DNA of 62,774 bases, the filler included, from Choristocarpus tenellus KU-1152 (Eukaryota > Protista > Phaeophyceae), in the NCBI GenBank assembly GCA_964200185.2. It is 11 parts of 11 records of this genome, joined end to end, with 100 filler letters (N's around TTAATTAATTAA, not from the genome) between each part and the next. Parts side by side here need not be neighbours in the genome. Positions count along the whole stretch, not along the records: positions 55,113 to 58,898 come from CAXNAD020017935.1; 10 more parts are not named here. One strand, 5' to 3'. The position numbers and the translations under genes are program-made. Under the pieces are notes generated by a model, which saw only the letters and a list, made by a program, of their open reading frames with translations, was not told the DNA's origin and made no database searches. Of this stretch, positions 986 through 58,998 are shown in pieces (position 1 is the stretch's first letter; every line of letters starts with the position of its first letter).

Positions 986-3659
986 TGCTGTTTTCTCTAA
1001 GAACACTGACCGAGTGTAGGTTTTGTGGTTTAGGACTGATAACAAGCATCTTTGGTTACGGTGACCCAAACAATGTTATGATGGTAGTCTCACACATAGT
1101 CACCTTCTCCTACAAACTCATGTCCGTTGACTAGCAGGCCTATCATGGTCACCACTGCATGCTGGATCGTCTTGTGCGTATCTATGAAGGGCGAGAGAAG
1201 GAGTTGCAGGATCTAGAGGTGAGCGAACATTTATTTGTACAATGATGCTACAACACACACTGTCTTTGTACTTTGAAGGGAAAAAGAACAATTGAGTCCA
1301 GTGAAAGCCATTGCTAACCTGGCAATAAGATGTATCAGCCAAACGGGAAGGCGAGGTGCTATGGACTTCCCGGTTGCAATGACTAGGAAGTACCTTGTAC
1401 AGTAACAGAGTCTCAAGGTATCTCGGAGGGGGTGGCGGCTCTCCATTTGGGGCCAATTTTTTCATATCACGATTTTTGGGTGATTTGGCTGCCATACGTC
1501 GGATGGATAATCCAAATGCACTTTTCCCGATTTTGGTCCAAATGGACATCCTCGTGTAGACCCCCCCCACCCCCACAGATACTTTGGGTCAGAGTTATTC
1601 ACACGTATGATGTCTTAAGTGCATGCATGTTGACAGGTATTTATGAATGGAGTGGTCTCGTCCTCTGAGCGGAGGCTATATGAGGACGAGGCAACGCAGG
1701 AAGATCGAGCATTTAGGCAGACTATGCTCGAGGCAGAGTTGCGGGAAAGCAAGGCGCAGGAGGAGGCTTTGCGTTCCAAGTTGTTTTACTTTGAGGACGA
1801 GGTCATCAGGCTTAGGTACAGCAAATAAATTTCTTGGTACAATATGCAGGTGCTAAGAATCCATACAGTTACCTATAGAAGACGAGAAGAAACATGGGTG
1901 TTAAGCAATGGTAATGTGTGAAGAACTCACTCCACAATATCCTCATGCTCCGACCTTCGAGGCTTGGTTTGATGTACCTCCTTCCAGGGCTGTGTTAATA
2001 TCTCCTCAGTTCTTCCCTCGGTTCTATGCTGGCAGCAATGTTATTAATCCTCTTGCCCAAAGATCAGGATCACTGAAGGGTACCACCTTTGCACTCCCTA
2101 ATAAAGACTGCATGCACCCTTGAGCTCCTAATATTATGATTGCAGATTTCCAGATATTGTTCTCCCAATTGTGATGCGTGCGTAGCTCAACTATCCAACT
2201 AAACACAGAGTAGCACTGGGATAAAACTGTCCCATGTCAGACCAAGATATAATCTATTGCCATTTTGCCAATGACATCATTGTGTCTGCAATAAGATGAC
2301 GTATAGAGCTCTAGACAAGCACAGCATGATGTTCTCTCACACATGTCATTCCGGCATTGAATTACTCTCTCCTCAAAAGAGAAACAGTGCACGCAGCTGT
2401 CACCGGGGGACACAATCATAATATCCACAACTCACTCACATATGGTGGGCGCTCCAGGAGGATCATGGGGCAGGATGTGCAGGTGAGCAATATTGAGGGA
2501 GGGTGCTTGACAAGAATTTGAAAGAAGAGCGACCTTTGCATTGCCTACGAGTGCATTTTTCTCCTTATGGAAAATAGATGCGTACATATTATTGCAACCT
2601 CAGAAAATACACTATACCTTAACCTCAACCGTATATGTGTATGCAATATTTCCCAGTCCTTCTGGATAGTTGAAAAATCCCAGCAAAGGCATTCTAGACA
2701 TAAGTCATTGCAATTGACACTTACTTCACCATGCCGCTTGATAGATAGCAGCAACTTAATCTCACTGATTTTGCCTCAATCTCTTTTATCGGAAATTTTC
2801 ATGATGCTGTTACCCTTGTCCAAGGACAAGATGATGACCCAGGGAGTTACTGTCTTGGCCTTGTCCACGGAAAAAGTGGATATGCATGCCAAGCATGAAA
2901 GAGAGATGGTTCGAATTCTAACGCAAATTGGTGCGGAGGACAAGTCCCAAGCGGAGGTACGCATTGCTCTACCAAACCATGTCTTTGTAGATCAATACTC
3001 TGTCATACTTCGAAGCAATGAATATGCATTGGTACTACCAATATTTAGCATGCTCTCTGTCTTGTGTGAGGTTTGGCGAACAAATCAATCATTTCGCAGA
3101 GAAGGCACTACAGTGGTATGCAAAAAAAAGTCTAGTGAGATACTGTGGAGGTGAGGGTGGGGGTAGGTGCTTGAATACCTCTTATACGGTCCTGATCTCG
3201 CCAATGACTGACACCTAGGCGCTACAAGCTCATTAAAGCCACTTGATGGCTCAGGATCATGGGTAGGAGTTATGCCAAGACTAATGATAGTAGGAATATA
3301 AGCAGGATTTAGAGGATGGGAGAGGAAGTGGTACCAAAAACAACGAACTATGGATCAGTAAAAAAATCTCCATAGCCTGAAAATAGAGGTCACACTAAGC
3401 CAAAACGGTGTGTGTGCCCTGCACCCTGCTCGAGCCCTTTATTTTTTGTATCAGTCTTAAGGAAGTATTGTTCTGGCCTCAACTCGGTGTTTACCAGTTC
3501 TGTAGTCTCACACTCCAGGGGAGAGCAAGGTGTGGTATCCCAGTCCTTTATCTGCAGCAGTGATGACGGCATTGTGCACTCTTCCTTGATGTAGACTAGC
3601 TAACAGGCATAAACTTGTTGCATGTAAGCAGTTGATTTCCAAATCCTATCCTTGTGACA

Positions 3660-55112: not shown

Positions 55113-55370
55113 AGTCAAAGTATCTTGGAGGGTAGAGTCGCGTCCATTTGTGGATCAAAATTCAATGTTGCGATTTTGATGTAATTTTGGTTGTCCTGTA
55201 TGTTAGGAAGTGTCAATATCTATGTTTCGGACACACCTTTTCATAATGTGTACATTTTACCTACTCCTAAACATTTTGCAGTAGTAAAATGTCATAAAAA
55301 AAAACCATTGGATCCAGGCCCCTAATGGACAAATAGGGCAAAACTCGTACCCTCTAAGATACTTTCACTC
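55113..55370 (+). mobile_element. MITE family copy F (near full length, used as reference)
   Basis: TIRs agtcaaagtatcttggagggta / taccctctaagatactttcact. Confidence 0.9.
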
Positions 55371-56543
55371 ATATCGACATATCGACAGTCATTTAAAAAA
55401 AAAAAAACATATCGACACTTTATCCCAGTCAATCTTGGGTCAAGCCCATCCTCAATGAAAAGCTCCATCCTCAATTTTTTTTTAAATCGGCTGTTCTGGC
55501 ATGTGTCCAGTCATCAATGGTCAAATCCTTTTTATCTCAAGGACCACCATACTCCAACATCGGTGTTGGCTACCTTCTTTCCCTATAGTATCCTGACACG
55601 TCCGTCTCTTGATCCCACTACTCTGCTCTTGCTACCTCTGAACTCTCTCTCCCACTAGTTTGCCCAACCAATCCTGTCCAGGTGCCAAAGGAAAAAAATC
55701 TACCCAGTGTAGCCAGGAGTATTCCAATCACTACTCACACATCTCTACAGAACCTACACAGACAGGTAATAGCCCCTGCCCCCAAACAGAACATCAGTGA
55801 CTGATGAAGGTATAATACAGTTAGAGTATCCTGTGCACTCGATATCAGGTTCCACCACCCCGTGCTTTGCCTCCATACAGTAAATTTTCATCTCCAAAGT
55901 CTCCAACTACACACACCTTCAGTGTATACCCAAACCTTGACGACTCCATTATTAGAGTCTTAAGGTATCTTCAAGGATTCGACACATCCCACGTGCGCCT
56001 CTTACCCATGATACTTCCCGCATCAGTAACTACTTCCGCAGTCCAGATACTCCGTACGACATGAGTTAGAACCAAAGTACTACATGGCAGTTCGGGGGGT
56101 CAGGGGTGGTTTGGCTAATAGTATCAGTATTCTCACTTTGGACCTGCACTATCATTCTGGCATGAGGGGTCATGAATTCTTCCTGAACACCACAAACTGG
56201 CCACCACCTTCATCCTGGTATCTTGTGTCCTGTACAGTTGGAGGAGGCCAATACCCTACCTTGTGACATGTCCATTACTACCTACCACACTTGCACCCTT
56301 TCCACTACTTTCCTAGTGAAGCACCACTGTGTTTCCCATACCCCAACCTACTTCCCTCTCCCTCCCCTACATTTTCTTTGTACTCCTTTTTGGATCCAAA
56401 GCCTCAGAACACCCACCTGTGATCAAAATCTGAATTATGTTCCAATCGAAAAAGCTAGGACTCCATTGTGTCCCAGAGCACACTACATCCTGCATGCCAC
56501 TCCCCCCATTTGCTCAGAGGTCTTCCCTACCCATGCCACCTCT

Positions 56544-56582
<39 letters not shown>

Positions 56583-56676
56583 ACCGCCCCCCCCNNNNNN
56601 NNNNAACTCCCCTCCGCCTGTGTCCACCCCACACCCCACCCCCGCCGCCCCCCCCCCCCCTTTGCCCCCGGTTCTC

Positions 56677-56718
<42 letters not shown>

Positions 56719-57905
56719 TCTTAACTGCCCTACTTTACCACCTACAGATCTCCTGCCCTCACATCAACTTCACATGGCAAAGAGGGATTGAATAGTTGAT
56801 GACTTGTTCAAAGCGGTAATTCAGATGAGGTCCTCGGCCGTGTCACACACTCACTCTGTCCCAGTGGGGTGAATCGAAAGCACCTACTAGTGTAAGTTCA
56901 GTCGGAAGAAAATGTCCTAACGTAATCGATCACAATCAAAACGTAGACACAGCGCACAAATGGAAAGGTCCGAATCGTTGAGTTCAACGGTCAAATATAC
57001 ATATTCGCAAGAAAATATTCAATCTAACATTCCCTTCAATTTTCAGTTTCGGTTCTCACAAATTAATCGATACCATTGCTCAATTCAATATTTACAACTC
57101 ACAAGAATATATTTTTTTAAATCAATTTATATTTTTTAATACTATCACGGTACGCCACTCCCTTTCAGTCACACGCTGTTTCTTCCCCACCCTGACCTTT
57201 TCTTCCTTTGCATTGGATCCATGGTTGATCTATTTTTCACCTAGAATTGTTACTTGGTCGACTTCTGGACTGTTGTGCACCTCATTCCTTTATATTGGTG
57301 TGTTTGGCCATTTATGCGTAGCCTCAGACCCTCTCCAACGGTAGCAGGATAGCATTGCCCGTACTGGTGATCCTCCATAGAGTATTATGCAGACACAGAT
57401 TGTTGTGTTCTAAACAGATATCCACATTCACGATTCACAAACTCCCTTCCATACAGACCTCTGGCGAGTGATACCTGTCCTTGATCAACAGATACCAGAG
57501 AAGCAGATTGCACTGATTCTTTAACACCCCCTGCTACCACTACTATTCAACCCCCTTCTCATGCTAAATAGGACTGATTCACCACAATCCAGGCACCAAA
57601 AGAAAGGCAAGATCGAGTTCAGCTCATCTATTTATCTACTAGCACATGAGCAAGCAAGCAGCAATTGACGAGTGAAAGTATATTAGGGTTAGGGTACGAG
57701 GCTTCCCCTGTTTGTCCATTTTGGGGCTTGGCCTCCCACGGGCTTTTAATGACATGTTACCTTCTTCAAAATATTTCGGGTTAGGTAAAATGTATACGTT
57801 ATGAAAAGGAGTGTCCGGAACAAGGATATTGACATCTCCTAACCAACACGATAGCCAAAATTACATCAAAATCACAACACCGGATTTTGGCCTGCAATTG
57901 GACGT

Positions 57906-58149
57906 TGCTGTAATCTTATATTCTTTATCTAGTTTTCTAATAACATATGCGGAACTACCAATTTTATGGATTAATATCTGCCCCCCAGTTTGCTGGTTCT
58001 ATGTTAAATTTGCGTGGGTAGTAATCTGTTGGTCTTAACTCAAGAGGTTTACCCATTTCAAATCTTGTTAGATATTTCTCCCATGTTAAATTTCTATATT
58101 CCAATAGATATTTTTTTAATTTGCGTAATATTAAATTATTTTTATTCAT
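57906..58149 (-). pseudogene. 5' fragment of an unidentified bacterial-style gene
   Basis: AT-rich, with purine-rich SD-like aaaaaggt upstream of the ATG at 58149. MNKNNLILRKLKKYLLEY... continues after a frameshift as HKIGSSAYVIRKLDKEYKITA to the insert edge. Confidence 0.5.
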
Positions 58150-58212
58150 TTTCTATTTACCTTTTTCAAGTAGAGGTTTTGAATTATTTAGTTGAATTTT
58201 CCCCGAGTTAAG

Positions 58213-58440
58213 AGATGCAAACTTGAAAGCGTTAGAGTAACTGGACGTAGTACAAGCGGAGTTATTTAATTTAAAACAGAAAAAAATGAGCAAGTTGTTT
58301 CTGCTTCATTAATTGCAGAATCAGACGGCGAAGATGAAGAAGATGGCGAAAATATTGAACAAGATACTGTAGACGCTAAAAACTCTGAAACAATTTCTGG
58401 GGATGATCAAGAGAATTCAAATAGCGGTACTGAAAATTAA
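58213..58440 (+). pseudogene. gyrA: DNA gyrase subunit A C-terminal fragment, Rickettsiaceae-like, with premature stop
   Basis: RCKLESVRVTGRSTSGVI*FKTEKNEQVVSASLIAESDGEDEED...TEN* is the last beta-pinwheel blade (GRxTxGV) plus an acidic tail. TAA at 58267-58269 sits where Leu (TTA) is expected. Confidence 0.88.
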
Positions 58441-58676
58441 TTTTCATCTAATATCATGTCTGCCAGTGCAAGCATTTCTCCTCCTTTTTGCGCTTTATTA
58501 ATTCCTTCATCAAACATTTTTTGTAACTTTTCTGCGCTTTCCCTGATACTAAGTTTTTTGGCAGTATAGTGCAATGCAACTTTTATAAATTCTATGCTAT
58601 TTTGAGCAAAATTATCTAATTTTTGGTTTGCCGTTTCCCAAAATGGCAAAAGATCATGCTTTCCAATATATTTCAT
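58437..58676 (-). pseudogene. 3' fragment of a bacterial gene convergent on gyrA, probably Rpn/YhgA-like (transposase_31)
   Basis: MKYIGKHDLLPFWE...IEFIKVALHYT...KGGEMLALAD resembles the Rickettsiales Rpn pattern MKHIxxRDLLxxW..I...LxYT..GExxMxxLA. Its stop overlaps the gyrA stop. Confidence 0.5.
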
Positions 58677-58998
58677 AGGCTCTACCCTAACCCTAAGATA
58701 CTCTGACTCTGAAGTAGTCAGAAAGTCCCCTTTACAACATCGTCGAGGCCGCATCAAGCACAAGGTCCTCTTTATATCGGATGCCCCTTGTGGGAGATTA
58801 CGTTCTTTGCCGCCACTCTGAAGTCAACCCCACAAGACGCCTACAGAATATTAATTGAGCGGGTCAGGGTTCCGTACAAAACTCGCGGGGGAGGGGGGNN
58901 NNNNNNNNNNNNNNNNNNNNNNNNNNNNNNNNNNNNNNNNNNTTAATTAATTAANNNNNNNNNNNNNNNNNNNNNNNNNNNNNNNNNNNNNNNNNNNN

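Follow-up and report, generated by a model that had tools for sequence, protein, structure and literature searches.

A 772-bp block of Rickettsiaceae-like gene fragments inside a MITE-like repeat copy of the brown alga Choristocarpus tenellus

Results

A MITE-like repeat copy is split by an AT-rich block

The locus described here lies in one piece (positions 55113-58898) of the window, i.e., the whole 62,774-nucleotide stretch of Choristocarpus tenellus KU-1152 DNA that was analysed. The piece contains two copies, A and B, of a repeat family of about 260 bp (258-268 bp) with terminal inverted repeats (TIRs); their positions and those of all other features are compiled in Table 1. The family displays the features of a MITE, being short and non-coding, without an ORF of note, bounded by TIRs and present in high copy number. 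Specifically, the summed depth of the Logan contigs matching the repeat is ~1.2 million, compared with ~22 for the unique flank, i.e., ~5x10^4 times the flank, which corresponds to tens of thousands of copies and thus places the repeat in the dominant genome of these sequencing runs. The two copies share an inverted match of 144 nt (81%), and the TIR arms of copy B comprise 27 nt (89%). The left end of copy A coincides with the edge of the piece. No target-site duplication is apparent in the sequences bordering copy B (..ATTGAC / TGAAGT..); two copies were examined, and the left flank of copy A lies beyond the edge. Both TIRs of copy B contain telomere-like TTAGGG/CCCTAA doublets (57686-57697 and 58686-58697), which copy A lacks. 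Elsewhere in the piece, long C runs (56545-56602 and 56640-56715) flank a 10-N gap and a G run (58886-58898) closes the sequence; these runs resemble sequencing artefacts of homopolymers, as arise where contigs end, more than genuine genome sequence.

Table 1. Positions of the repeat copies, the insert and its segments in the window
Feature	Position	Strand	Remarks
Copy A, uninterrupted sister repeat	55113..55370	opposite to copy B	TIR arms 22 nt, 91% complementary
Copy B, left part, 236 bp, MITE-like	57670..57905		left TIR 57670-57696; aligned with copy A
Bacterial insert, 772 bp, assigned to Rickettsiaceae, Megaira group	57906..58677		GC 0.316, bacterial homology, contigs of three runs
Segment A, first ~80 codons of a hypothetical gene	57906..58149	-	homology to P0003 and L029/L030/L040; cut by left junction
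Region upstream of segment A and A/B joint	58150..58212		L029 homology fades at ~58180-58200; joint at ~58200-58212
Segment B, last 75 codons of gyrA plus stop	58213..58440	+	last C-terminal beta-pinwheel blade and acidic tail
Segment C, 79 terminal codons of a probable Rpn/YhgA-type (Transposase_31) gene for a putative transposase	58437..58677	-	cut by right junction
Copy B, right part, 32 bp	58678..58709		right TIR 58683-58709; aligned with copy A

Copy B is split into two parts by an AT-rich block of 772 bp. In an alignment of the two copies, copy A runs without interruption from GGACGC into GACTCTACCCT, whereas copy B reads GGACGT, then the 772 bp, then GGCTCTACCCT. The consensus of the other family copies in public reads at this site is GGACGCGGCTCTACCCT, and copy B resumes the family consensus with GGCTCTACCCT at the base directly after the insert (58678). 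The agreement of copy A, copy B and the family consensus implies that no host base was deleted and no target duplication was created at the insert, so that the exact interruption of a MITE reported in the initial annotation holds to the base. The boundary is ambiguous by at most 1 nt (T at position 57905, compared with C in the family consensus). The GC content is 0.316 in the insert and 0.42 in the flank and the repeat. Bacterial homology has its left limit exactly at 57906 (relative to the contigs L029, L030 and L040) and its right limit exactly at 58677 (relative to the contig L001), and outside these positions no match to any of the 45 bacterial loci compared was found.

The insert consists of three truncated gene fragments

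The block comprises three gene fragments, segments A, B and C, all of which are truncated, and holds no complete gene. Its DNA as a whole matched none of the PLSDB plasmids or GenBank phages. Small ORFs yielded only sub-threshold matches (Csm2, SASP, tail needle knob) in Pfam, NCBIfam and PHROGs, which were treated as noise, and a search of the piece with Rfam returned no RNA family.

Segment B aligns to the C terminus of GyrA proteins of 900 to 930 residues and was assigned to the GyrA C-terminal domain. Its best PDB matches, which are weak, correspond to the last GyrA blade. The Pfam family DNA_gyraseA_C (PF03989) was matched with an E value of 3.3e-5 and 23.7 bits; this score misses the 27-bit cut-off, as the 22 residues preceding an in-frame stop codon were the only ones scored. 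This stop (TAA, 58267-58269) occupies a position at which all five aligned relatives have a leucine codon (TTA, CTC or TTG), in agreement with the single nonsense change noted in the initial annotation. Apart from this stop, 37 conserved residues are identical to the C terminus of GyrA from the Rickettsiaceae metagenome-assembled genome (MAG) contig JALZUG010000008.1 (L007). At the nucleotide level, segment B is 91% identical to L007, 82% to L017 and L011, and 78% to L020; the identity to the Ca. Megaira endosymbiont of Nemacystus is 81% over 107 nt.

Segment C ends with a stop codon that overlaps the gyrA stop, and the gyrA and Rpn-like homologies overlap by 6 nt (58441-58446). It is 92% identical at the nucleotide level to positions 799-1036 of L001 (ENA contig ERZ17293944 NODE_47202), and its homology to L001 ends 14 codons short of the stop in L001, at the gyrA end. 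The longer frame of L001 matched only Rickettsia plasmids (E value of 4e-5) among the 72,556 plasmid records of PLSDB, and the genes concerned are annotated as 'Rpn family recombination-promoting nuclease/putative transposase'. The 79 residues of segment C itself retrieved the same Rickettsia Rpn targets with a weak E value of 0.03. The match of P0001 to PF04754 (E value of 0.003) is below the cut-off and covers the C-terminal part only, the nuclease domain being absent. The ATG next to the right junction represents an internal methionine of the Rpn-like family and not a start codon. L001 as such (positions 1-1246, 40x coverage) is a patchwork of IS630 HTH, frameshifted Rpn-like and IS200-like fragments.

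For segment A, a word-indexed protein search with its 61-codon ORF returned nothing; an exhaustive HMMER search matched this ORF to P0003 with 69% amino acid identity and an E value of 1.4e-17. Three further HMMER hits of the ORF were discarded as repeat or low-complexity matches. P0003 is encoded on two Logan contigs and one 15-kb JGI contig (L029, L030, and L040; GC 0.29-0.34), to which the DNA is 75% identical over positions 57906-58179. A deletion of 2 nt near 57969/57970 causes a frameshift, leading to a stop at 57964-57966. The relative in L040 has its full length of 278 residues and is 93% identical to P0003 over 95 residues; it also shows a weak Imm11 match (E value of 0.0014). No match to plasmids was obtained for P0003 or for this 278-residue relative, and the 827-residue protein encoded next to the latter in L040 had a plasmid of Ca. 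Megaira polyxenophila as its sole match in the plasmid database. A relative of the gene upstream of the segment A homologue is located on an alphaproteobacterial contig together with GapR and an autotransporter. The link of segment A to the Rickettsiaceae is thinner than those of segments B and C. Relatives of this upstream gene follow very large genes of the filamentous-haemagglutinin type (2164 aa, PF13332; L044, 996-8070; L040, 1-2757). Judged by homology, segment A may derive from a locus of the polymorphic toxin/immunity type.

No known bacterial locus is colinear with the three segments. The gyrA homology is cut in the middle of the gene at ~58212 and adjoins sequence from upstream of segment A that is unrelated to it; ~12 bases between the two are unmatched by any relative. 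Upstream of this point the relatives carry on in gyrA codons, encoding NDELMLITNNGKLI directly before position 58213, whereas the window does not. The differences between the insert and its relatives fall mainly on third codon positions, with counts for the first, second and third positions of 5/0/14 in segment C, 14/15/30 in segment A and 0/1/2 in the conserved part of segment B, and the indels of the gyrA tail are in frame.

The GyrA fragment groups with the Megaira-containing clade

The 14-residue GyrA tail motif was scanned as the degenerate pattern ESVRxTGRxTSGVI in one genome per species of 185,579 prokaryotic species. This search yielded 27 loci, about 24 of which are titled Rickettsia, Ca. 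Tisiphia, Ca. Megaira or Rickettsiaceae; the remainder include two loosely named proteobacterial MAGs and one contig binned as Janthinobacterium. Since the loci belong almost exclusively to the Rickettsiaceae, the tail signature can be regarded as diagnostic of this family, as had been supposed from its residues at the outset. The Janthinobacterium lividum MAG contig (L026; JBPBQH010000019.1, positions 3282-3323) carries a Rickettsiaceae-type GyrA that groups with the Rickettsiaceae MAG L012, and it is probably mis-binned.

IQ-TREE was used to calculate a tree of 30 relatives and the fragment, based on the C-terminal 500 residues of GyrA and with X at the position of the fragment's stop. The fragment was placed as sister to L007 with support of 99/89, a placement in which it fills 11% of the columns (75 residues) and all rows had been preselected by the motif. 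Both lie inside a 99/96 clade that includes the sole named Ca. Megaira row (L021) and sequences from aquatic metagenomes and that is separate from Rickettsia and Tisiphia (96/95). The nesting within the Rickettsiaceae was the outcome anticipated in the initial annotation. Note that the nearest relatives of this motif-selected 75-residue fragment (L007, L017, L011, and L020) are Rickettsiaceae MAGs, none of which is titled Megaira. The matches of segment C point to the Rickettsiaceae independently of gyrA. In JGI metagenomes, an exact or near-exact nucleotide pattern of the L007-type gyrA tail was not found; a looser codon pattern retrieved nine Megaira-like gyrA genes with 70-79% nucleotide identity, none of which is adjoined by segment A or C. 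On the basis of these homologies, we assign the insert to the Rickettsiaceae, and the donor was probably a bacterium of the Megaira group.

Contigs from separate runs connect the insert to the host repeat

Logan contigs, which are assembled per run, from three public runs of one study (X1, X2, and X3) were placed on positions 56750-58898. These runs are possibly the assembly's own data, so that they serve to exclude a mis-join by the assembler and do not represent an independent sample of the population. In X1, a contig of 1043 nt (record 1) connects the unique flank with the repeat (56750-57735) at a depth of 21.7, and a contig of 792 nt (record 8) covers 57916-58707 with no differences at a depth of 23.9. 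The latter crosses the right junction (58677/58678) with 30 nt on the repeat side, one below the 31-nt rule. The left junction (57905/57906) is crossed by a 96-nt contig of X2 (record 13; 57853-57945), again with no differences and with 53 and 40 nt on its two sides. X3 provides a contig over the insert from 57916 to 58227.

The depth of the insert is close to that of the unique flank in X1 (23.9 versus 21.7) and X3 (3.5 versus 2.5), whereas in X2 the insert contigs (7.9, 4.4, and 3.5) are shallower than the flank (14.1). All other repeat copies seen in the reads join the region 578xx directly to 58678-58685 without an insert. This depth, together with the absence of the insert from the other copies, indicates that the cargo-bearing copy is present as a single copy. 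The contigs over the insert break at 57916, 10 nt inside it, in all three runs. The junction contig of X2 ends at 57945, and the 30-nt overlap from 57916 to 57945 constitutes a branch of the assembly graph; this branch may stem from another allele, from an additional copy or from a form with a deletion. The insert is physically joined to host sequence and is best read as part of the nuclear genome, not as contamination or a chimera, which is what the initial annotation had argued from its pseudogenisation and from the halves of the repeat on either side.

Discussion

In our view, it is very probable that DNA of the Megaira group was caught by end-joining repair inside one MITE-like copy as a patchwork of donor pieces and now persists as a non-functional single-copy relic. 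A double-strand break would have fallen within one copy of this very abundant repeat, and DNA of a Megaira-group intracellular bacterium would have been captured in the host nucleus in the course of end-joining repair. Two or three donor pieces of ~230-300 bp each, covering the 5' end of the hypothetical gene and the 3' ends of gyrA and the Rpn-like gene, would have been ligated bluntly or via a few bases of microhomology, with neither a target duplication nor loss of a host base, and the insert would subsequently have decayed neutrally. Blunt insertion without duplication or deletion is a product of end joining, as is established for organelle DNA insertions. The lack of colinearity with any relative speaks for the joining of two or three donor fragments at integration.

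Signs of neutral decay are the change from TTA to TAA at 58267-58269, the 2-nt deletion near 57969/57970 and the truncation of the three genes. Pseudogenisation had been recognised before from the nonsense codon; the frameshifting deletion, the truncation of all three genes and the lack of colinearity with a bacterial locus are additions of the present analysis. As no gene is complete and two of the pieces carry disabling lesions, the block does nothing. The bias towards third codon positions and the in-frame indels imply that most of the divergence of 8 to 25% from the relatives arose in bacteria under selection. Decay subsequent to the transfer is suggested only by the TAA codon and the 2-nt deletion, and the insertion is therefore probably not old.

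An assembly chimera or contamination, in which reads of a free symbiont were misjoined to a host repeat, might be suspected because the block is bacterial and AT-rich, because the scaffold is short, is interrupted by a stretch of N and has homopolymer runs where contigs end, and because the depth in X2 is lower over the insert than over the flank. However, both halves of one repeat copy are intact, which a random mis-join would not produce, and contigs assembled per run by a different assembler cross each junction without differences in different samples. Moreover, the insert in X1 has the depth of the host flank, and the X1 contig is unbranched over 57916-58707, which leaves no sign of a closely related free bacterial copy in this run. 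The restoration of the repeat copy to the base and the recurrence in separately assembled samples thus render a chimera very unlikely. Alternatively, the source could have been ingested or environmental bacteria or a transient infection rather than a stable heritable symbiont. Relatives of the Megaira group are common in aquatic metagenomes, and the Logan contigs show no obvious symbiont sequence alongside the insert. Against this, Rickettsiaceae are obligately intracellular, and access to the nucleus is most simply explained by residence in a germline or clonal cell; we regard such a source as rather improbable, and it differs from the capture of symbiont DNA by end joining only in the duration of the association.

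The block could also have been copied colinearly from a donor locus in which rearrangement and partial pseudogenisation had taken place beforehand, or from an older and larger nuclear tract, in which case the mosaic and some of the lesions would predate the insertion. In a donor genome rich in repeats, even both lesions could have been present before the transfer. Rickettsiaceae relatives do carry patchworks of truncated mobile elements, such as the IS630, frameshifted Rpn-like and IS200-like sequences of L001. Furthermore, the L007 contig ends 1 nt past the gyrA match, 6-7 nt after the gyrA stop; it stops where the Rpn-like segment of the window begins, as contigs do at a repeated element, and the adjacency of gyrA and the Rpn-like gene may consequently be native. 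Yet gyrA is an essential gene that every relative has in intact form, none of 36 related loci shows a stub of 75 gyrA codons next to an unrelated promoter region, and the Rpn-like gene is likewise cut relative to L001. Patchworks formed by end joining are known from organelle DNA insertions, and the piece sizes seen here (230-300 bp), with a few bases added or shared at the joints, fit this pattern. A rearranged donor locus or older tract is therefore unlikely, though it carries appreciable weight. Far less credible is that the repeat captured the bacterial DNA as a Pack-MITE and moves it around. Of the mobilisation envisaged in the initial annotation, the structural premise stands, since both TIRs (27 nt, 89%) are present with the cargo between them; mobility itself finds no such backing, as the insert has the depth of the single-copy flank and the other repeat copies in the reads are without cargo. 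In addition, a target-site duplication is not recognisable at the ends of copy B, and the cargo sits at a random internal point, unlike the form predicted for transposase-mediated capture. That the cargo-bearing copy is still mobile and spreads bacterial DNA in the manner of a Pack-MITE, as might be read from the graph branch at 57916/57945, the intact TIRs and the huge repeat family, is likewise very doubtful.

With capture by end joining as the preferred reading, the locus offers a base-resolved case of bacterial DNA entry: the host sequence is intact to the left and right of the insert, and the donor can be assigned to the Megaira group. The host lineage would accordingly have housed, or would still house, a Megaira-type bacterium. 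For annotation and decontamination pipelines, the AT-rich block belongs to the host scaffold. The insert provides the host with no function and leaves the knowledge of lateral transfer from Rickettsiales unchanged.

Several known systems share features with this insert. Nuclear insertions of organelle DNA (NUMTs and NUPTs) arise by non-homologous end joining and exhibit blunt or microhomology junctions, no target duplication or host loss, and mosaics of non-adjacent fragments. The junction type and the mosaic structure found here are alike, whereas the donor is bacterial and not organellar. Pack-MITEs and Pack-MULEs carry fragments of host genes between their TIRs and form transposed copies with target duplications. 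The insert resembles them in being foreign sequence between the TIRs of a non-autonomous element; it differs in that its cargo is bacterial and single copy and that a target duplication was not found. Wolbachia insertions are mostly non-functional and decaying, are often located in or near repeats, have been validated by junction-spanning reads, and reach the size of whole genomes. Such nuclear insertions in arthropods and nematodes were reportedly described by Dunning Hotopp et al. in 2007. As in these cases, an intracellular bacterium of the order Rickettsiales has left DNA in a host chromosome, where it is non-functional and decaying; the C. tenellus insert originates, by its homologies, from another bacterial family and is a mosaic of less than 1 kb.

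The nuclear genome of Volvox carteri contains a tract of ~9 kb with four genes of Rickettsiaceae (Megaira-related) origin, which was deduced from phylogeny and synteny, and the host may no longer carry the bacterium (2015, PMC4324946). Both loci comprise DNA of a Rickettsiaceae (Megaira-related) endosymbiont in the nuclear genome of a eukaryote that may since have lost the bacterium. Unlike the tract in V. carteri, with its four genes in bacterial order, the insert of C. tenellus spans 772 bp and consists of three truncated, non-colinear fragments in a transposon copy. Transfer from Rickettsiales to the nucleus is already known, and what is new here is a small mosaic example inside a transposon copy.
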